Shown here piece by piece: positions 14,623 to 31,800 of a stretch of 64,000 nt of DNA. Made by a program: the position numbers and the translations under genes. Location of the stretch: NCBI GenBank assembly GCA_965644295.1, contig CBFFRP010000141.1, positions 124,001-188,000 of the forward strand, read 5' to 3'. The notes under the pieces are model-generated. The model had not been told where the DNA came from and searched no databases. It worked only from the letters and a program-made list of their open reading frames with translations. The stretch's first letter is position 1; the number at the start of each line of letters is the position of its first letter. The DNA comes from Paraphysomonas bandaiensis. Lineage: Eukaryota > Protista > Chrysophyceae.

Positions 14623-18140
<3,518 letters not shown>

Positions 18141-18635
18141 AGGAATATGAAAGGCTTTCGGGACTATATATTCGTTTCAATATACTTCTATTTGTTCATA
18201 TGGAATCAACACCAATCAACGTTTCGGGCGCGGTGTTCTGTACCGTGTACAGTACGTATGTTGACGTAACTCAATATATTATGCCTTATTTTCGACTGTA
18301 TCATTTTAAAACTGCCAGTAGTTGTCACAGTCGTTTCGTCTTGCAGTTGTGTATTGTATGCGCATAAAATTTAGTTAGGATCACTAAAAGTCGATGATAG
18401 TGCGTTCAGTATGGATGTAAGAGTTTTATAGGGAAGTTATTATAGGATGTTAGATACAATAGCTCATGACTCATGACTGTCTTTGCATCCTGTAATGCGG
18501 TATGAAGACCTTTCCATCATGATGAACGATGTACTGCTAAGTACGAAATATATAAACTTTCATATACGTACTAACACGGTTTGGTAACAATATATTGAAA
18601 TACAACATAATATTGTAAAATGTCATATTATTATT

Positions 18636-19115
18636 AGGCGCTGAGAGTCAGTACTATTTCCGTGCTTGACTCTGATATCCTACTATTTAGCGCTACGAAG
18701 AAAGCTGCTTGTGCGTCACCTTAAGAACTAAGGTGCAACCACGTTCGCTCCATCACTCAAAGTAAACGCAGTGGGTAGTGAAAAAGCAGAATTGATATAC
18801 CTGATATATACCTGACATCTGCTAACTTCAGAATTTTTGAGTCCTTAAGGTGAACAGCCCGGATGCTTAACTTCAGCAGGCAGCCCAATACCCCGGATGC
18901 TTTGAGGTGGGAGGTGAACCCATTCCCATATGCCTGTTTATTAGTCAAGGCCCAATGAAGTCTACGCAAGTGACACTTATTAGTGTCTCTTGCACCACAC
19001 AAACATTAGCTTATGAGTGGGCAGAAATTATCTGCTGAATATATATGGTATATGCGGCGCATGTTACTTATCCCCCAAAAAACCACGAAAAGGTGCAAGT
19101 CCGAGTTTGTTGAGG
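18636..19115 (-). mobile_element. Dispersed repeat copy 1 (SINE or LINE-3'-end-like), homologous to 50240-50734
   Basis: Collinear similarity over about 480 bp, with shared blocks ACTCTGATATCCTACTAT, AAGGTGCAACCAC, ATTTTTGAGTCCTTAAG, CAGCCCAATACCC, TATGAGTGGGCAGAA, ACGAAAAGGTGC. Ends in (TAA)3 on the minus strand. Confidence 0.7.
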
Positions 19116-19349
19116 GTTGTTAATGACTACTGCATACTGTATTCTTCTAGTAACGGTCATAATTTGCTCTTATGTTCAGAAATCCTAAAACCTAGTAGCG
19201 TATGCAGTACTTCAGCATTAAACAATGACGTATAAGCCGTGAAATTCATCATAAGCGCAAAGTGCTGTTGAATTATGTAGTAATGGCATATATATAACAC
19301 ATGTTAAGTATTTTAATCGATCTAGTCAAGTACAATAATCTAAATTTTT

Positions 19350-22300
19350 CTAGCAAGAGCATGTAGAACTTTCTGAGCAGCTTCTAGGGCTGTCTTTGAG
19401 CCGAAATGAGGTCCTCTCATTTCCTGGCGACGATAAATATTCAAGTCGGCCCTGTTGTATCACATTACAATATTATATAGTAATTTTAAATACTTCATAT
19501 ATACATATATACAGATATTGATAATCAGTTCCACATCACATATTTAATTTCGAGGTTAACACGCAATACCGTACATACAGCCCCACCTGTTCACTCTTCA
19601 AAAGAGCATTTGATAACGCTTCCTTTATATTATACCCAGTCTTTGCAGATGTCTCAAAGAACGATGCGCACATATTCTGGCGAGCAAATATCAAACCGTC
19701 CTCGAGAGATACCTGTTGAACCATCTTCAAAACAGAAGGCAGTCGATGTGGAGTATTACATTGATAAAGCAGTGGGTATACAACGCATACATTGAAATTT
19801 ATCCAGGCAAAAGTAGTGCAGACATATACGACATATATTACGACGGATACGAAATGGTATTCGTGTCATAGTACAACAACGCACCTGTCTCAAATTGTCC
19901 GATATATCGGCTTTGTTTCCTAGCAAGACCACAGATGTCCAAGGTTGCATTCCTGCATGCACCAACGTAACGTACATATACACACAACCAAATAATAAAT
20001 AATATAAGATGAAATCAAAATAGTGTGATCTCCAGACAACTGTAATAAAGCTAAATTGAGCTGACATTCCGAAATTTGGTCCATGTCAGCATATTACATA
20101 CTTACCACCATGGTGCAAATCTGCAAGTATGGATTGAAGAGCATCAAGACTCTCCCTATTCGAAACATCGTACACCGCGAACAAAATATCGGCTCGTCTA
20201 CAAAACATACTTAATACACACTTCTCGGATAATAATCAGAAATAAATGACCGTCATATATTTCTCATCTAGATAATGCTTCAAAATGGATAAATGATAAA
20301 ACAGTGTGATACAGATCATGAAACAATGACCTACTTGGCTTTCGCTTTGACGCTACCAAACTGAGACTTTTGGCCGGCAACATCCCATATATCAATAACG
20401 AGCTTACCTACAAACACAATAGCTATTATACACGAATTTCAACACATGAGTATATATATCATAATCATACACCATGCAGTCGCGTCTAAACATAGTATAC
20501 CCAATGGATGTTGAATCAACTGCGTGCCCATTGTGGGTCGCTCTGTTGGGTTAAACCCCCTTTCGCATAATCGGTTCATGATACTAGTCTTTCCTACAGC
20601 ACCCTCTGCGTAAACCAAAGAATTACAAATTGAATCCACACATATAACTACATCGTTGACTAATGGTCCCCTACACGATTGGCTATAGCAATCAATACAT
20701 GATATATAACACCACGACTCTACCTCCACACATAACAAGCTCATATATGCCCTCTATAAACATGACTTGTGATGCATCGAATTCTACGTTTCCCACTTTA
20801 CTGGTTCCTATTGGCGATGTCTCTCGTGATGATACTGCTGACGAAATCTTCACGGGTGTTGAATTTGCAGTGCTAGCGGCGACCATTAGAGCTATTTTCC
20901 TGTCATACTCGGCGCGTACACGACACTCTTCATTATGCACTTGCTGCATAAGAGATACCATGTCTGGTCTGCCTAACTGGTTCAATTGTTTATTGAGGTC
21001 ATCAAAATCTTTTGAGCTAATATTAAGTCCATTCGCACTCGATCCTACAGTTGCGGTGCCCTCTCGAGTTGTGTTCAGTAGAAGAAGTCTCCGACCATCG
21101 ATGTCTTTATCAAAAAATACTTTCTCCAAGTGTGACATAGATATTACTCGCAGGTACGCGGACACATGAAATGTCGACCAATTAACAGATATCCATTCTC
21201 GGTTGAAGTCCTGGTAATCTTGTACGCTGAAAAAAGATACCGTCACATGGACACGTACTGCACGGAATACATCGATAACAGAAGCAGGCGACTTAGATGG
21301 AGATTCCTCATGAAAAAAATCTTTTATAGAGTGATATGAAGTGTTGTCAATATGATACGAAAAAAGGTCCTTCTTTGTGTCTTTATCAATATTCATCTTT
21401 GCAATAACCTGGTTACACCACGAATCAGACTTAAAAATCACCGACTTTAGCAGTACTATTCATGAATACTTATAAACAATGATGCGGTCATATTTTACAC
21501 CAAGTATCCTAACTACGAATATATCGGCCACGGTATTGATTCCTGTGGTTCCACTTACCTTCTCTAGTAGGTCATTATTTACATTGAAGTCATTTGTATA
21601 ACTAAACTGGAAGCTGTAGCTGTCACACCACTCATCCAGCCTCCGCCTAACCATTTCAGTATATTCTGGTATATGGTGAAGATACGTGTAAGTGCTTGCA
21701 TGGTCTATGTAGGGAGCCATATATTGGGGACAAGGCACGGTAGTTCCCATTCGGGGATGTCCATTGAACGTGATCGCTTTCGCTCCAAGCAGCATACATA
21801 AGCACTGGAATTCGGATCTAGAATAACATACCCAGTGATTTTACAACAGTCATAAACAAAGTAAGTAGATATGGACGAGCATTCATTCATACTTATATCC
21901 AGTAACATCCGCTATTCTGTTTTCTTACATCATTTCATCGATAATAGTCCAGTGAAACACATCCACCCCAATGAACCTCACTTTCATGCTGAATGGATGT
22001 TTTCGATATATCATGTATTCAGTTGGTCCTATTGAATAATATTTTATCATGCTTCATCAGTATCATAATGTACAATACGTCATGAGAAATACATACAAAA
22101 AAGATTTTACAGCTCGATCTACGATGGTGAGCTGATATACCTGGTTGCATAACACGTATCCAGGTATCATTCTGAGCATCAGAGAGGGACAGTACATCAG
22201 TGGGTCCAAATTTCCGACAAAATTTTCCCTTCATATATTCCGACCGCGCCACTCCCCTGTGCACAACCCCTCCTGTCCTCGTCACAAAGTCTTCATCGGG

Positions 22301-22564
22301 TAAAATGACAATAAAATCTTCCCATTTTCTCAAGGATAGTTCCTCATTATCTTCGTGGTGGCTGTCAAGGGTCGACGACGGATCAGAGGTCACTTCTGGA
22401 GGCATTAGGGACTGAATATTGCGATGCATTAGTGTACTGGAGTCCATCGACATGTGCTGTACAGGAAATCCAATATCAAGTAGGTAGCGCCGATATCCTA
22501 AAAATACTAGGAAAGAATTCAATCTCGTTAATTATACTACACCACACGAGAGATTCTTGCCCAT
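19350..22564 (-). CDS. Multidomain Rab-like small GTPase: MGxxxS N-terminus, uncharacterised domain, SAM domain, Rab domain, CSC C-terminus; multi-exon
   Basis: Spliced G-boxes: YELVMCGEGAVGKT (G1), PTMG (G2), IWDVAGQ (G3), LLGNKAD (G4), FETSAK (G5). Last exon ends ..SSTCSC-stop (19350). SAM motif WSTFHVSAYLRVISMSHLEKVFFDKDIDGRRLLLL lies in the same open exon (20692-21441 ORF) as the start of G1. Proposed first exon ATGGGCAAGAATCTCTCGTGTG followed by a 45-nt intron. Confidence 0.78.
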
Positions 22565-22596
22565 ATCTCAGCTGAAATTATTCTTCTACTTTTCCT

Positions 22597-22897
22597 CATA
22601 CATGCATACATACATACATACATACATACATACATACATACATACATACATACATACATACATACATACATGCATACATACATACATACATACATACATA
22701 CATACATACATACATACATACATACATACATACATACATACATACATACATACATACATACATACATACATACATACATACATACATACATACATACATA
22801 CATACATACATACATACACATACATACATACATACATACATACATACATACATACATACATACATACATACATACATACATACATACACATACATAC
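22597..22897. repeat. (CATA)n microsatellite, about 300 bp
   Basis: About 75 CATA units with a few CATG/CACA variants, beginning about 30 bp upstream of the proposed Rab-gene ATG. Confidence 0.98.
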
Positions 22898-23812
22898 CCA
22901 CATGGACGTATAGATAGATAGGTTCACAGGCCAATGATATAGCACTGCAATGGCCGCGTAATGTTTGATATGATGAAATGACGTAAAATCTGTGACTGTA
23001 TCAACATCTACCGTCTTGCTACCTGCAGTTCACGTGTACACAGAATGCCACGAGCTATAGCACATATGAAATATGTGGACATGGCTGAAGGGCATTTCGT
23101 CAAGGATTGGGCACACTGGATTACGAATGGAAAATATTGATACTAACCATGAATATGATTGAGCATTACGCATTCTGAATCCTGAATGGATGAAAAAATC
23201 ACCTTCTTTGAGCCGAAACCTGGTCTGGTGTTCTTCGTCTTGAATTTACCGTTTGCAATCAGCAAGTCCACAGGTTAGTTAGATATATAATGAACATATT
23301 ACAGGCTATCGTCTAATATTTTGCTTCATGGTGCTACAGTAATTAAATATATTGATTGGGGAACCGGCCAAAAATGCCATCAATATAGTTTTTGTTAAAG
23401 CAGCTCAAAATATATTGCAATCAACATTTTCTTCAGTCAGCTCTAATATTAAGAAACGAAAAGTTGAAACATCTGAGTACAGGTGCACGATATGTGCCGT
23501 GTGAACTTCCAATACATGTGAATGCCTGCCCAGCGCAGCAAATTTATTTTACCAGTGTTGGAAAAACATATGCATCGCATTGCACTAAATATGATGTTGT
23601 TTCTGAAGCCAATTCGACAGCTGCGGCCGGATGCATGCGTATTTTAATTAATTTTGGAATGAATGATGACTCAGAGGACGAGGAAAATAGTGAATAGCTA
23701 AGCAGTAGACTCATGTGATCTCAGTGAATAGTACGAAAAATAGAATATATGGATGTGTTTACTTACTGATCAATAATACTACTATATATTTGCAATCTAT
23801 TGTACAATATAT

Positions 23813-24687
23813 CAGGGCTGCGTATCAACTATTTTTTAATTAGTTGAAGAAGATTGTAGTCAATTATAATTGCAATTATTACTTGCTGTCTCAATTTCAG
23901 TTATTGCAATTAACTGCAATTAATTGCAATTATTTAGCACTAAACTACAATAGCTGCCAATATAGCTACCTTCACTGCCATTTTATTCCAGAGGCGACAG
24001 TTCATGCTTAAAAGCATAAGTAATACTCTTGGAGCATATCAGTCGTTTGAATCTTAGTTATACTGAACAACCTTTCAACCCTATTGGTTGTGGCATGCAA
24101 TTGCTTCATGCTGCGGTAACGAGTTTGCTAATTAAGATGTGCTCGCTTCTTTACCTGCTACCATCCATCTAACGTTGCGCGGCGCCGTCATTCTGAACTA
24201 GACTCTCACTGTCATTAACTTCTTCATCAAAAATATTTCAATTTTAATGTCCTTTGCTGCACGTCCACCCATCAACAATCAAACCGAAATGCATTGGAAG
24301 CATTGCAACCACTTCGTTATTATCATTTGTTTTCTCGAAAAACACTCGTGCATTGACTTCAGGTACCAATCTATCGCTCATATCACCACTTATTTAAATG
24401 AATTATTATGCGAGTACATTTTATGACTAGGTTTATAACTAAAATTGACTAGGTTGAATCATTTATTGCTTTGACTAGTAGGTTATTCCACAAAAAATAA
24501 TGTGGCTAGGTAATTCAACCAATTTGACTAGGTTGAATAATATTTCCCATCAATTTTTCGGTATAAAAAATGGTATTTTATATCAATTAAATAAAGCTAG
24601 CTGTAGTCAATTATAATTGCGATTATGATTTGATGTCCCAACTTCAATAAATGACAATTAATTGCAATTAATTGATACGCAGCCCTG
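23813..24687. mobile_element. Non-autonomous hAT-type DNA transposon (875 bp)
   Basis: Perfect 16-bp TIR CAGGGCTGCGTATCAA (23813-23828) / TTGATACGCAGCCCTG (24672-24687). Flanks CAATATAT and CAGTATAA match 6/8 (decayed 8-bp TSD). Subterminal CAATTA repeats. Minus-strand remnant LPMHFGLIVDGWT at about 24260-24300 resembles the first catalytic Asp region of hAT transposases. Confidence 0.88.
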
Positions 24688-25334
24688 CAGTATAATGCAA
24701 TAGTATTATATAGGGGAAGGTGAATAGAATTTACGGATTTTTCGAGGACGTGGAACTGATGTTCGGGCAGTGCGCTGGATATGTGGCGTCCGAATGCGTC
24801 GGAAAATTGTGTGGCAGTAATGTGGCCGGTCTAGTAGTGCTCAACCTGAGGTGTGTGTGGATGATGGAACACTATCTAACAATAGATTGCAATATATTAT
24901 TACCGAGCCCTGGTTAAAACAGGGTCGTTGCGATTTTTCAATCGATTAATATATATCAGTATACGAGATTCTGGAATTCATGAATTCCTCAATTAAATTG
25001 TGTATTAGGTAGTATGCCAATCTTTCTGTGGGTCTTACGCTATAACTCTCAATCTCTCAATGATCACATTTTATTCAGAATACTAAGTATTAAGAGACTA
25101 CGGAATAATGTCTATATAATATATATCGTCATTTAACGTGATTAAATTACGGAATATTCACAAATGCCTACACCAATGCCCTACATAGATGAAATGAATA
25201 TGGTCATAGTAAACAACATAGCCTCTAACAAAAAAAATGGAGGTGTATAGACTACTAGCATGATAAAGGAATGTAATAAGTCAGTCATGCAACCTTCCAG
25301 AGGTGAATATAATGTCCATCTGTTGTATAGTACG

Positions 25335-26603
25335 CTATGAGAATGGGCAATCCCGAATGATGCTACCATCAATGTCATGTATATCACGATGACCACACAG
25401 TGCCATGGTCAAATCCAACTCCTTGTGTATAATATCTAAACTCTGCTTTACCCCATTTTTCCCATCTGCCCCCAGCCCGTAAGCGTACGCGCGTCCCAGT
25501 AAAACTCCCCGTGCACCTAATGCAATAGCTTTCAAAACATCTTGTCCAGATCGTATCCCGCCATCCAGCCATATTTCGGTTCGGGGCGTTGCTTTGGGTC
25601 GCTTTAAGTTACCACTATTGAGCTGACCTAATACAGACTCCAGATCATGACACTCTTCATTTTCTCCATTGATATTATCCAATGACCCAGAAGACTGATG
25701 GAGATCTAGCTGATTCAAAGCCCGAACAATTTCAGGCAATATCGCTATAGAACTGTCAGCGTCATCTAACTGCCTCCCCCCATGATTAGACACGACAATC
25801 GCATCTGCACCAGCCTTAACTGCCAAAACAGCATCCTCAGGGTCCATAATGCCCTTGAGAATTAACTTTCCTCCCCACCAGTCTTTTATACGTGCCACGT
25901 CATCCCAGTTGAGTGTTAAATCAAATTGCTCACTCGACCATGCAGACAACGATGACGTATCGGACACACCTTCCACATGACCGACTATGTTGCCAAATGT
26001 GTGATTTCTAGTTTGAAGCATTTCAAAACACCATTGCGGTTTTGTAGCCATATTCAGAATATTTCTGAATACAGGTTTAGGAGGAGCAGAGAGACCATTT
26101 TTGATATCTTTATGCCTCTGTCCCATAACCTGGAGATCTAAGGTGATAACAAGGGCAGAGCATTCTGCAGCTTTGGCACGCTGTATTAGACGTTTCGAGT
26201 ACTCATGGTCTCGCATAACGTATAACTGAAACCAAAACGGAGCTGATGATTGTCGGGCAACTTCTTCGATTGAACAAATTGACATAGTAGACAGCGTAAA
26301 AGGAATACCGAATTCTGCCGCAGCTTGGGCTGCTAACACCTCGCCATTTGCTCTCTGCATTCCTAATAATCCAATTGGAGCTAACGCTACAGGCATCGAG
26401 ACAGAATGGCCAATCATAGAAGTTTTAGTGCTGCGATTAGACATATCACGAGCAATACGCTGGCGAAACTTTATTCGTTGAAAATCAGACTCATTTCGTC
26501 GATAAGTGGATTCCGTCCACGATCCAGAGTCCACATAATCATAAAACATTCTAGGAACCCGACGTTGAGCAAGAAGTCTCAGCTCTTCTATAGTTGTGAT
26601 CAT
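25335..26603 (-). CDS. lldD: FMN-dependent alpha-hydroxy acid dehydrogenase (L-lactate dehydrogenase LldD-like), intronless
   Basis: RRVPRMFYDYVDSGSWTESTY, PFWFQLYVMRD, LKGI, VSNHGGRQLD signature, DGGIRSGQDVLKA. Confidence 0.9.
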   Translation of the reverse strand: MITTIEELRLLAQRRVPRMFYDYVDSGSWTESTYRRNESDFQRIKFRQRIARDMSNRSTKTSMIGHSVSMPVALAPIGLLGMQRANGEVLAAQAAAEFGIPFTLSTMSICSIEEVARQSSAPFWFQLYVMRDHEYSKRLIQRAKAAECSALVITLDLQVMGQRHKDIKNGLSAPPKPVFRNILNMATKPQWCFEMLQTRNHTFGNIVGHVEGVSDTSSLSAWSSEQFDLTLNWDDVARIKDWWGGKLILKGIMDPEDAVLAVKAGADAIVVSNHGGRQLDDADSSIAILPEIVRALNQLDLHQSSGSLDNINGENEECHDLESVLGQLNSGNLKRPKATPRTEIWLDGGIRSGQDVLKAIALGARGVLLGRAYAYGLGADGKNGVKQSLDIIHKELDLTMALCGHRDIHDIDGSIIRDCPFS

Positions 26604-27149: not shown

Positions 27150-30100
27150 ATGAGTAAGAAGTCAGGCTGGGCCCCCTCTCAGTCTGCAGGGGGAGGGACG
27201 ATGAAGCAGAGCGAGCCCACTGAACAAGAGATGCTGTCGTTCTCATCGCTATTGAAGGAAAATAATGCCGAAGCGAAGAGGGCTCTTGATTTGTACTCAC
27301 AGACTCAAGATAAGATTCAGTTTTACTCTCAGATCATAGGGCTCTGTCGCAGGACTGCTCCGGAGAAAAAATCTACAGATACCAGCAAATCCTTCGAGCA
27401 GAAGCACCACGCAGAGGTTCCACCGACTGCACCAAAAGAACCGCGGAGAGGTGTGTGCTTCAAGTTTCGCCAGGGAACATGCAATCGCGGTAGCAGCTGT
27501 CGTTTTGAGCACACTGCGGAACAGCCCCCAGCGTCGGTCTCGTCCACAACTGATACTGAAACGAAGACACAACCTATGCAATCAGTGAAGTCTGAGGTCC
27601 TTTCTTCTGGAGAATCTAAGGCGTGTCAATTCTATTTAACTAATGGAACTTGCCGCAAAGGAGACAAGTGCAAGTTTGTTCATCCTGGCAGTGTCAGAGA
27701 AGGACAGAATTGGGTGGACATAGCCAGGCGCCCTGTCTCTGGGGTAGTTAGCGTTGTATCGAAAGAGCGACCAAGTGTGGACAACTCTACGGCTAGTGAT
27801 AGTGTGGCTGAGGTGGCGGCTCCTGTCTCTGCATCAGCCCCAGAAGATGTGAAGGCGAATGAGGCACGTGCGAAGAAGCTAAAGGCAAAGAAGAAATCCA
27901 AATCGGAAAATAAAAAATCCCGCGATGCGAGCTCGACTTCGGAGCCGAGTCCAAAACAGTTGGAGGTGACCATTGGTAGAAGTACCGACCAAGAATCCCA
28001 AGCCACCGGGTCGTCTTCGGTCGACCAGGAGGACTCTCTTTGGATGACACTAAACTTGGCGAAGCTTAGTACACCGTCCCCTGTCCTCTCTGGTGTGGAC
28101 AGTGCTGAGTCTGAGAAACGGAATATGACTGCCGATGAAGTTGTTGCCCCTGCCTTGCCCCCCGGGATTCCTATTGAAACTTCTCCACGTTCTCCGGCTA
28201 TAATCGATCGGACACAACCACAGCCACAAGTTAAAGATTTGACTCCTCTCAATGGTCAAAGGACAGAAGCAAGCGAGTCAACAACTGTTTCTTCAGGCTC
28301 TAATGCTCGCTCCGAACCTCCTGTACCCCCTTTTATGGGAATGGGATGTCCTCCCCCCTATATGATGGGTATGTATCCTCCTCACCCCCATCATCCCATG
28401 GCTATGCAACCACCGTATGGACCCATGCCATATGGCTACTTCCCGCCGCCTCCACAACACCAGCTTTCGGACAGGCCTGTTGGTGAGAGAGAGAGGTCTG
28501 GTGGAAGCGAGCAAGGAGATGGTGAGGGGAGAGGACCAAATCCCCCCTATCCCTATCCGTACATGGGCTTTCCGTATCCTCCATATGGTCTGCCCCCATT
28601 CATGCCGCCATATCGAGAACCTCCTTACCCTATGCCACAGCACATGATGCCCCCCTACATGCAGCAGAATCGACCGCAGAACGATAGCCCTAAGCCTGAA
28701 GACACTAGGCTTCCCCAGCCTCTACCAACCCCAACTGTGAGTGCCAATTCACCCGAAAGCAATCCTAGTGCCGTAGTCACTCCCGTTCAAACTCAAGAAC
28801 AGTCTCCTACGGATGAAGAGGCCTTATTGAAAAGGCTGGAGCATCTCTCTCCCGCGCGTGTTCTTGGTGGTTCTAGCACTGAATCCCCTTCGATCTACTC
28901 TCACTCCCCTGTGGACCCGCAGCCACAGTCTATCGCGTCTGTCGGGCAGAGGGGCGCTGGTGTTATTGGACCAGGCCCTGCAACTGCCCCTACTGTCTCT
29001 AGTGAGGATGGCAACCGCCCTCAAATGCCCTCCCCTTCCCATGGCAAAGTTGTGGGATTACAGCGCAAGGATGAGGATGGAGGTAAGAGCTCAGCTCTGC
29101 TGTCATTTCTCAAATCCAAAGGGTCAACTGTCCATACTCCCATGCAGCCTGCTCCGCCCCAGGATACTCAACCCCGCGGTCCACCTGCCGGAAATATTGG
29201 AAAGCAAACCCAGGCCAATGTACAGGTTGAACCTCCCTCTTCAACTAAGGAGGACGATAAACTGTTGCAAGTTAAAAAGGCGCACCGCACCACGAGGAAC
29301 CAACGTGGCCGGGTTAGGATATGCATTAACCCTTCTAGAAGAGACCCTGACAGTTATTACGACATGCCTGTGGATGGATTGGCTTCAGGACCTGTACTCG
29401 CTATTGACACAGGAAAACAGATTATGGTGACCTGGGAGATCCCAGCGGAGCAGTACTCTGAGGGACTAGTAGTTTCCCTCACACGTCTGGGCTCTATGAA
29501 TAATTCTAACTGCATTGTCTCGAAGGCGCTAAGGAACTCACTGCGAAGAGGTGAACATGAAGTCCGGATTTCTCCCGAGTCCCCTTTGTCCAGAGGACTC
29601 GTGGGTGAAGATGTTTTACACATGGTCAAGTTTGGGGACATTAACTTCCACACTCCGAAGGCAGGTGGTCATTATGTGTTCCGTATGTTCGACCCGACTT
29701 CAGAGGAAGCAAATGTCACTCTTGGAACCTCACCAGAGTTTGTGGTTCAGCTGCGTGGATCTGATGTGAATACTAATCTGAAGTACGCTTGTGAGGCACT
29801 GAAAAAGGCAAAAATTGATGTTGGAAGTGTAACAGCACTGCGGAGTACTTTCGAGCTGATGGCTGCAGAGGGTTTGACACATGACAAGAGGAGCCCACAT
29901 CAGCTACTTCAGCAGTGCGTACAACTTTTGTTGGACGCAGTTCAGAAGAACATGGATGCACTCAGCGAGCGTGATAAGGCTCTGATACAGCAGCCTGTCG
30001 AGAAGGAAGATGGTAACAACGGAGGGATGGATGGTGTAGACAAGGCTGAGAGTACTGTGTGGACAAAGGCACGCAATGCTCAGAGAATTCACGCGGCTGT

Positions 30101-31800
30101 GTACGATTGCTTGGTAGAGCTGAGAGACAACAAAATCCCCTGGAGTATGCTTACACCCGCTCAGAAGGAGACCGTTTTGTCTGTAATGAGTCTTTTCTGT
30201 CCTATCCTGCGTAGGTTTTTCAACCATGGGACTGAGCTCGAAGCAGCCCGTCAAATGGATCTTGGGTTCAATCCCTCGCCACCCATGCAGACTAAATTTG
30301 CCGCTCGTGCCATCTCTCATCTTAATGACACCATAGCCTCTCGTTTGCGTGAATTCTTGCCGTCTCGGGACTTCTACGAAATTAGAGAAGCTGTACGATG
30401 TCGTTTACAAGAAATTCTTCACCGCGGTGGCGTCATCCCGAGGTCGGCATGTGTTGAGGTGTTTGGGTCGTCGCGCAATAACTTCGGCAGCGATGGGGCA
30501 GATTTGGACATGTGCCTTCAGTACATCCCTGGATCACATGTGCCCGCTGGTGATGATAGAGGTCAGTATACAAATTGTGGTCACATTTTTGTATGACAAT
30601 TTGCAGTGAAAGTTATGGATCACCTGGGCGAAGTTCTTATCGCTGCAGGAATGGAAGATGTAGAGGTACGCAGTACTGCACGAATCCCGATAGTCTTATT
30701 CAAAGATCCTTCATCTGGTGAGTCGTATGTCACTCCATCCACGACATCTCATATTAGTTCTCTATTATATAGGTCTAGCATGTGATATTTCGTTCAGCAA
30801 CCCGTTGGCCATACAAAACACTCTTCTGTTGGCAGCATACAGTATGGTGGACCCACGCGTGCGGGAAATCGCCTATGTCGTCAAACACTGGGCGAAGCAG
30901 CGCAGAATAAACTCTCCACAGGAGGGAACATTGAGCAGTTATGGATACATTTTATGTATAATCCACTTCCTACAAACCAGGAGCCCACCCTTGCTGCCGA
31001 ACTTGCAGAAGCTTCACCCCTCTTGGCATCCCCGGGCCCCGTATGACCCGTCACCCCTTCCAAAGAGATGGTACAAACACCCTGTCGACGATTGCTACTG
31101 CAATACATATTTCTTCGACGTTGCCCCATTTCCGAGTGCACAGCAACCCGGTGGGCCCGCTCCTCTTCAAAAACTACAGGTGCCTTCTGTGATTTATATC
31201 TGAGTAATACCCATAACTCCTCGTTGTGTGTAGGCGTGGAGTGCTTGTAACGGACAGAGCAGTGGAGAATTAATTGTTGAATTCTTCCGTTACTTCGCAT
31301 ACGAGTTTGATTATCATAGCGACGTGGTATCAGTGCGGCGAGGAGGTCTAGGCCGAGTAAAGAAGATCGCCAAGATGGAAGCAGACGGGTGGGGATCCCA
31401 CGATCGCATCAGGTGATAATTGCTAGCCCCTCGTTCTTCGTATTTTTACCATATGTGGTAATGTAGTATTGAGGATCCCTTCGAGACCTGGTACGACGTT
31501 GCCCACGTCGTCAAGGGGGCGCAGATGAGTTATATCAGAAGAGAATTTTTGGTGAGCATTGGGAACACGCTTATTATATGGCTTGACTGACTCGTTGAAC
31601 CGCAGAGAGCGTACACCATGATCTGCCGCTCCCAGCCAGATGGTAGTAATCACGAACAAGTTGACTGCCTTCCGACATCACCTAGTGTATCTGGGCTGTT
31701 CGACTTGCTTTGTGAAGAGGCCGAGGAGCCCAAATTTGTAACGAAACGCCAAGAAGCAAGGAGTAGATCGAACACCTTGGCGTCTGATGCATGCAATTAG
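27150..31800 (+). CDS. Cid1/TUT-family terminal nucleotidyltransferase (non-canonical poly(A)/(U) polymerase) with two CCCH zinc fingers, multi-exon
   Basis: CCCH fingers CFKFRQGTCNRGSSCRFEH and CQFYLTNGTCRKGDKCKFVH; Pro-rich region; catalytic VFGSSRNNFGSDGADLDMC; ARIPIV; CDISFSNPLAIQNT; VKHWAKQRRIN..GTLSSYGY; PAP-associated IEDPFETWYDVAH. Introns e.g. 30562-30606. Confidence 0.92.

Follow-up and report, generated by a model that had tools for sequence, protein, structure and literature searches.

Can one gene join a Rab-like GTPase to a SAM domain and an orphan domain in a single expressed protein, and what would hold such a protein at a membrane? The question is raised by a locus on the minus strand of a 64,000-nucleotide (nt) stretch of Paraphysomonas bandaiensis DNA (contig CBFFRP010000141.1, positions 124,001 to 188,000 of the forward strand), here called the window, whose coordinates are used throughout. 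An original prediction, spliced by eye, had placed there an unknown domain, a SAM domain, a Rab GTPase and a CXC tail in one protein with lipid anchors at both ends. We found that the locus is a genuine, expressed gene. Its product is probably a 640-residue multidomain Rab-like GTPase of a rare, undescribed eukaryotic family, with a C-terminal membrane anchor and with the SAM and N-terminal domains as scaffold or effector under a guanosine triphosphate (GTP) cycle.

Gene structure and the start of the protein

The stretch or part of it was contained in 19 public sequencing runs, polyA marine metatranscriptomes among them. In the RNA or presumed-RNA runs, about half of the sampled words of the stretch were present, which matches the expectation for a spliced mRNA. 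Contigs from four runs of four studies (X1, X3, X5 and X9) were compared with 18800-22600. One X1 contig (record 1) of 2083 nt extended from 22528 to 19265 with nine joints and contained the N-terminal part together with the SAM region and every exon of the GTPase. Hence the unknown domain, the SAM domain, the Rab-like GTPase and the CXC tail do stand in one protein, as had been proposed, and a transcription of the Rab exons apart from the SAM and upstream exons is not borne out. The multi-exon gene occupies 19350-22453 of the minus strand. Every intron is GT-AG; nine introns were backed by spliced contigs of the four runs, the smallest confirmed one being 93 nt. The RNA-supported open reading frame has 640 codons, from MSMDSSTLMH at 22453 to CSC-stop. 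The transcript is made up as follows.

19265..22537, minus strand: mRNA extent, minimum 5' and 3' ends (X1 record 1, 22528..19265; X3 record 5 reaches 22537)
22141..22453, minus strand: coding exon 1, residues 1-104, ATG at 22453-22451 (RNA contigs; start aligned with closest relatives)
21929..22028, minus strand: coding exon 2, residues 105-137 (joints 22027/22140 and 21817/21929 in four of four runs)
21559..21817, minus strand: coding exon 3, residues 138-224 (RNA joints; profile A1 match 5.3e-39)
20724..21408, minus strand: coding exon 4, residues 225-452 (joint 21406/21557, cut +2, in X1 and X3)
20501..20605, minus strand: coding exon 5, P-loop GEGAVGKT (intron-spanning) and switch I, Thr477 at 20532-20534 (joint in four of four runs)
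20335..20407, minus strand: coding exon 6, G3 DVAGQ (20370-20384) and divergent switch II (RNA joints, sequence)
20106..20197, minus strand: coding exon 7, RADILFAVYDVSN..., RabF5-like stretch (RNA joints, Rab2A alignment)
19885..19952, minus strand: coding exon 8, G4 NKAD (19906-19917) (RNA joints, sequence)
19587..19712, minus strand: coding exon 9, G5 ETSAK (19641-19655) (joint 19710/19883, cut +2, in four of four runs)
19350..19451, minus strand: coding exon 10, hypervariable tail, CSC at 19353-19361, TAG at 19350-19352 (RNA joints, sequence)
19953..20039, minus strand: 87 nt of intron retained by an alternative acceptor (20040/20039) (joint 20027/20106, 13 letters between, in X3, X5 and X9)

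As rebuilt, the original exon model had 11 exons from 22564 to 19350 with GT-AG introns and 673 open codons to a TCSC-stop. Nine of its ten introns were recovered in the RNA contigs, seven with exact joints and two with a shifted acceptor. The acceptor of its exon 5, placed at 21429, lies at 21408, which removes the seven amino acids SDSWCNQ in frame, and that of its exon 10, placed at 19724, lies at 19712, which removes the four amino acids MVQQ, again in frame. The closest relative, P0001, matches the junction sequence of coding exon 9 (RQV..EEG). The split of YELVMCG/EGAVGKT by a 118-nt intron was exact, and the five G boxes, the switch II DVAGQKSQFGSVKAK and the TCSC-stop are all present in the sequence. 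The tenth intron, of 45 nt, was not borne out.

Between the RNA contigs and the assembly there were six coding differences (21013, 21598, 22307, 21736, 21057 and 22390), four of them synonymous and the other two Thr to Ala, in X3 only. They point to strain or species variation under purifying selection. A second mRNA form was seen in X3, X5 and X9 at a depth similar to that of the canonical joint. Its retained 87 nt insert 29 hydrophobic residues (VVWRSHYFDF...) in frame between alpha3 and beta5 of the G domain.

The 45-nt intron decides where the protein begins, as it belonged to a proposed first exon:

22498..22564, minus strand: proposed exon 1 (22543-22564, MGKNLSCG) and 45-nt intron (22498-22542), unsupported by RNA contigs

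With this exon, the protein would be a membrane tether with two anchors, N-myristoyl and palmitoyl groups at MGKNLSCG and geranylgeranyl groups at CSC. The ATG at 22564 followed by GKNLSC does fit the MGxxxS consensus, and cutting out the 45 nt bounded by GT..AG restores the frame. However, the contigs of X1, X3 and X5 were unspliced across the 45 nt, although every other intron had been removed from the same contigs. They end at 22528, 22537 and 22503, downstream of that ATG, and the intron would have half the length of the smallest confirmed one. An in-frame TAA at 22534-22532 blocks the frame upstream and there is no ATG between 22537 and 22453. Because of these three observations (unspliced contigs through 22498-22542, the TAA and the lack of an earlier ATG), the expressed open reading frame is placed at 22453, the first AUG of the observed mRNA. 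Read unspliced, the ATG at 22564 gives MGKNLSCGVV-stop, an upstream open reading frame of 10 codons if it is transcribed at all.

The relatives agree with this start. In the closest one (locus L007), a stop codon lies five codons ahead of MSDTFNRRSLSSLIPSE, and L005 begins MAGLSSFQKRELSAVLPSS; both align with MSMDSSTLMHRNIQSLMPPE of the studied protein and so start at the position of the Met at 22453. More distant members begin MSSEGSD, MSKLTEN, MAKFTEN and MSAPTED, and Gly2 was found in none of eight relatives' N-termini. We therefore rejected the N-myristoyl/palmitoyl start: the MG exon is unspliced in the RNA contigs, the first AUG gives MSMDSS and the relatives are without Gly2. The RNA contigs and the relatives' N-termini thus give a different first exon that lacks Gly2, and the notion of lipid anchors at both ends falls with the N-terminal one. 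Since contigs can mask rare forms, a minor spliced form could conceivably exist, but a doubly anchored tether is very improbable. Here a textbook-like lipidation motif in a plausible by-eye first exon was overturned by RNA and homologues.

The domains ahead of the G domain

The protein begins with a tail of some 45 residues, followed by an alpha/beta domain (about 250 residues), a SAM domain with a long helix, a Ser/Thr-rich linker, the G domain and a hypervariable tail ending in CSC. Coding exon 4 alone contains the end of the N-terminal domain, the SAM domain, the long helix, the linker and the first strand of the G domain. The parts ahead of the linker lie as follows.

21196..22321, minus strand: alpha/beta domain of unknown fold, residues about 45-295, over three introns (conserved in 13 relatives)
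20965..21195, minus strand: SAM domain, residues about 296-372 (family profile, AlphaFold2 model, Foldseek)
20863..20967, minus strand: long helix after the SAM domain, residues about 372-406 (AlphaFold2 model, helix at 90-124 of a 130-residue stretch)

The SAM domain was confirmed by a family profile and by a structural model. The studied sequence alone matched Pfam SAM_2 at no better than E = 0.066, and its relatives exceed the Pfam cut-offs for SAM_1/SAM_2. When a profile of the 130 residues and 12 relatives was compared with the PDB, the top of the list consisted exclusively of solved SAM domains, led by those of Sfmbt (8.7e-7) and SARM1 (1.7e-6) and followed by neurabin and polyhomeotic. 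The AlphaFold2 model of the studied stretch had a predicted local distance difference test (pLDDT) of 87.9, and a Foldseek search with the SAM model returned SAM domains in all of the best 50 rows, with template-modelling (TM) scores by target of 0.6-0.82. The domain, expected at about 20975-21180, was found at about 20965-21195. It shares the five-helix fold and the profile match with the SAM domains of Sfmbt/Scm/Ph, SARM1, Shank and DGK-delta, but differs from them by some 18 extra residues that form a loop, modelled with low confidence, between helices 4 and 5. A helix of 35 residues follows the domain. Prediction of a SAM homodimer gave a score of 0.01, which reads neither for nor against self-association.

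The first 45 or so residues are probably a disordered tail. The alpha/beta domain behind them carries the invariant residues D53, K77, Y112-R113-x-H115-P116, H130, E140, K151, R197, D203 and N293 in the family alignment, and a profile of it retrieved four further fragments. The corresponding part of a full-length relative (P0006, residues 1-258) was modelled as a two-lobed alpha/beta structure with a pLDDT of 74 and a predicted TM score of 0.65. Neither Pfam (E up to 10) nor PADLOC matched the N-terminal domain of four relatives or the exons of the studied gene. A Foldseek search of the model against the PDB gave nothing significant (E above 0.2), a fold search of BFVD gave no match, and exhaustive VIA-align gave a best Z of 4.0 for a thioredoxin-like arrangement over residues 4-101, below the tool's stated noise level. 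In the ESM Atlas, similarity over about 200 residues (TM 0.51-0.53) was found for four clusters of hypothetical bacterial proteins to which no Pfam family is assigned. Exhaustive and profile searches by sequence, and the Atlas features, revealed no bacterial relatives of the domain. The modelled resemblance to bacterial proteins is borderline and may serve as a lead only.

The G domain, its tail and the family

An exhaustive HMMER search with the large exon among 1.84 billion representatives found 12 representatives, the best at 3.4e-29 and 37% identity. A word-index protein search with the same exon, whose length window leaves out full-length proteins, gave no match. In Pfam scans the relatives showed SAM_1/SAM_2 and then Ras, and the same architecture was found in P0001, P0003, P0004, P0006 and P0012 and at the loci L003-L007. 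The full-length P0006 (592 residues, from a transcript contig) aligns end to end, including the N-terminal domain (tblastn 2.5e-129). At the genomic loci of P0001, P0003, P0004 and P0012, omitted N- and C-terminal exons were found around the predicted fragments, and the intron positions are shared with the studied gene. The family is present in several unrelated-looking eukaryotic genomes of 22% to 44% G+C. In the 62.6-Mb genome the gene is single-copy, with no paralogue of the large exon or the N-terminal domain, beside about 80 matches to Ras-family exons.

The sole name from any source was the automatic "Rab26, partial [Symbiodinium microadriaticum]" of P0001. This protein (NCBI CAE7445532.1; locus L007) comes from a 4.9-kb contig of a Symbiodinium microadriaticum assembly. 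Its prediction omits N-terminal exons that are present upstream on the contig, and the contig stops before the last exon. In the literature, no SAM-Rab, SAM-bearing large Rab or protist or diatom Rab-like protein with a SAM domain was found, within an incomplete coverage that leaves absence unproven. We conclude that the family is rare, eukaryotic and undescribed.

The boxes of the Ras superfamily follow each other in order in the RNA-supported open reading frame: GEGAVGKT, T477, DVAGQ, NKAD and ETSAK. On single exons, Pfam gave Roc (5.5e-6) and Ras (0.0058) for coding exon 5 and Ras (3.9e-5) for coding exon 9. On the whole G domains of the relatives, the Ras model was clearly ahead of Roc, Arf and others, with 1.9e-32 against 9.4e-19 for Roc in the full-length P0006. 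When the family profile A3, which includes the studied exons, was compared with the PDB, the best 60 chains were all Rabs, a ranking and not a phylogeny, with RASEF/Rab45 at the top (4.8e-22). For P0001 and P0006 the best solved chains were nearly all Rabs at 72-83 bits; those of P0001 were Rabs in all of the best 60 places, and the first non-Rab of P0006 stood at rank 42. In an alignment with Rab2A (about 30% identity), the family showed T-[IM]-G in switch I, WD..GQ and VYD[VI][ST]. By the same alignment, RabF5 is kept (VYDVS), RabF1 (IG kept) and RabF2 (WD) are partial, RabF3 is altered to QFGSVK and RabF4 is replaced, which leaves the motif set RabF1-RabF5 incomplete. Taken together, the comparisons make the G domain Rab-like and stop short of a proven Rab. 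Switch II, described in the original prediction as divergent and as a hint at lineage-specific effectors, is indeed divergent; it is family-specific and conserved in the nearest relatives as Q[FY]G[ST]xKA[KR], which argues for dedicated partners.

The protein ends 33 residues beyond the G domain. The last exons of the studied gene and its relatives all begin with GRL after a common intron and lead to di-cysteine ends, CSC in the studied protein, CPC in L004, CNCA in L006 and CCK in P0006. In two members, P0005 and P0009, the N-terminal and SAM domains are kept, but the P-loop is degenerate (G..GVGK[KR]) and both DxxG and the terminal cysteines are missing; these two probably represent pseudo-GTPase branches. 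Because the members with degenerate motifs are the ones without terminal cysteines, intact G motifs and the di-cysteine tail go together in the family. The tail fits Rab-type geranylgeranylation, which we infer from the motif. P0005 (L002) also carries a low-complexity tail of about 300 residues.

The protein was compared with known GTPases of similar build. A review of large Rabs describes EF-hand and coiled-coil modules only (PMC8303950), and among about 1,400 verified Rab sequences three Rab types only had an additional domain (Kloepper et al., PMC3425129). Like Rab44, Rab45/RASEF and Rab46/CRACR2A, the studied protein has a long N-terminal module and a helical region before a Rab-type G domain that lies at the C-terminus and carries a prenylation tail. 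Whereas the animal large Rabs carry EF-hands and coiled coils (PMC8303950, PMC3425129), it combines a SAM domain with a domain of 250 residues that has no known fold, and RabF4 and switch II are unconserved. No EF-hand family was found in Pfam scans of the exons and nine relatives; membership in the Rab44/45/46 group was therefore rejected, in line with the distinction drawn in the original prediction.

With Rab2, Rab5, Rab6, Rab11, Rab14 and Rab21 the protein has in common G1-G5, the catalytic Gln, T-[IM]-G, a RabF5-like VYD[VI][ST], a hypervariable tail and a CXC end. It differs from these canonical Rabs by an identity of about 30%, a shorter hairpin, replaced RabF3 and RabF4 and 440 extra N-terminal residues. 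Plant ARA6/RABF1, a Rab-type GTPase to which the original prediction turned as an analogy for an N-terminal acyl anchor, has Gly2 and Cys3 and lacks the C-terminal cysteines. The studied protein shows the reverse, with no Gly2 in the expressed open reading frame and CSC at the C-terminus, and it was rejected as a member of this type. In ROCO proteins a Ras-like G domain also lies inside a large multidomain protein, and Pfam Roc matches the P-loop exon. In contrast to them, the studied protein is without COR, and on the relatives' whole G domains the match to the Ras model surpasses that to Roc by many orders of magnitude. ROCO membership was rejected, as there is no COR match and only 33 residues follow the G domain. 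ROCO proteins are not known to carry a prenylation tail.

A proposed membrane-anchored switch and its alternatives

Starting from the observed gene structure, single transcript, domain identities, family and conserved di-cysteine end, we propose the following mechanism. Both C-terminal cysteines would be geranylgeranylated and hold the protein on a membrane, with no lipid anchor at the N-terminus. The G domain would alternate between its GTP and guanosine diphosphate (GDP) states. The SAM domain with its helix and the N-terminal domain would form an integral scaffold or effector, which the GTP/GDP cycle would recruit to partners or free from them. A possible parallel is given by the animal large Rabs, in which EF-hand and coiled-coil modules stand ahead of the Rab domain.

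Several features weigh against this reading. In the Rab2A alignment, the YYRG of RabF4 is replaced by AKRA/TRRA, the beta2-beta3 hairpin is four residues shorter than that of Rab2A, and, beyond the Gln, switch II resembles that of no Rab. Because of these three differences, it is not assured that REP, GDI and RabGGTase would recognise the protein and that it would be prenylated. Also, with the 29-residue insertion some transcripts may not yield an active GTPase. The protein could instead belong to a separate Ras-superfamily lineage and not be a functional Rab. Its likeness to Rabs would then be ancestral, its cysteines would be handled otherwise, for example by palmitoylation, and the GTPase would chiefly regulate the attached N-terminal module in cis instead of recruiting effectors of trafficking. 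The lost RabF4, the altered RabF3 and the family-specific switch II favour such a lineage, as do the modest Rab scores of 72-83 bits against 65 bits for a Rac-like chain. In P0005 and P0009, moreover, the N-terminal and SAM domains are retained although the G motifs are degenerate and the terminal cysteines are missing, which suggests that the family is built around the N-terminal module. However, Rabs take all of the first 60 places among the solved chains in the family-profile comparison, switch I with its T-[IM]-G and the VYD[VI][ST] motif resemble those of Rabs, and the CXC/CC ends are a Rab signature kept in the relatives with intact G motifs. A separate lineage is thus the less likely explanation, though its chance is far from negligible.

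A different role would be that of an oligomerising signalling or defence switch, in which the GTPase would gate an N-terminal enzyme or effector of bacterial ancestry that is assembled, like SARM1, through its SAM domain. The nearest SAM domains oligomerise (Sfmbt/Scm, SARM1, Shank, DGK-delta and tankyrase), the N-terminal model resembles the four bacterial clusters of the ESM Atlas, and the invariant residues include the polar D53, Y112-R113-x-H115-P116, H130, E140, K151, R197 and D203. On the other hand, a TM near 0.5 is a borderline value when both structures are predictions, the searches by sequence and by Atlas features yielded no bacterial protein, PADLOC gave no match, and the gene is single-copy with ordinary neighbours. 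We regard such a switch as quite improbable. Slightly less improbable, but still doubtful, is the idea that the 250-residue domain is a new effector or enzyme fold, possibly common to uncharacterised bacterial proteins, within a class of membrane-anchored, SAM-assembled, GTP-gated switches. The membrane-anchored Rab-like GTPase with a built-in scaffold or effector remains the reading that we prefer.

The surroundings of the gene contain the following neighbours, with a kinesin on one side and the other two genes on the other side.

14916-17505, plus strand: kinesin motor, in two pieces of open reading frame
25335-26603, minus strand: flavin mononucleotide-dependent alpha-hydroxy-acid dehydrogenase (match 2.1e-130)
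27150-30596, plus strand: CCCH zinc-finger protein with a poly(A)-polymerase-like palm domain

Nothing in this neighbourhood suggests an island or a cluster, and Rfam gave no match over 17500-25500. About 70 bp upstream of the observed 5' end of the mRNA lies a microsatellite, (TGTA)n/(TACA)n, that is about 280 bp long (22607-22888) and has a few interruptions; it produces long spurious open reading frames in several frames. A dispersed repeat of about 420 bp (18700-19120) follows about 150 bp past the 3' end of the gene. It had more than 2500 first-look candidates in the genome, and the 40 scored copies were 74-80% identical. Depth over this repeat was very high in the RNA contigs, reaching about 17,000 in X1, and numerous divergent contigs as well as loose ends were seen there.

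Rabs almost never bear extra domains, and the locus adds a fourth kind of large Rab-like protein that is expressed and conserved. What is new is a large Rab-like architecture made from a SAM domain and a domain without a match in Pfam, the PDB or viral fold libraries. If the doubtful idea of a new effector or enzyme fold were true, the orphan-domain family would be a protist equivalent of SARM1-like signalling proteins that oligomerise, with a Rab as its chassis. The gene offers an entry point to the wiring of GTPase switches to new output modules in protists and to the role of the orphan domain with its invariant Tyr-Arg-x-His-Pro, His and Glu.

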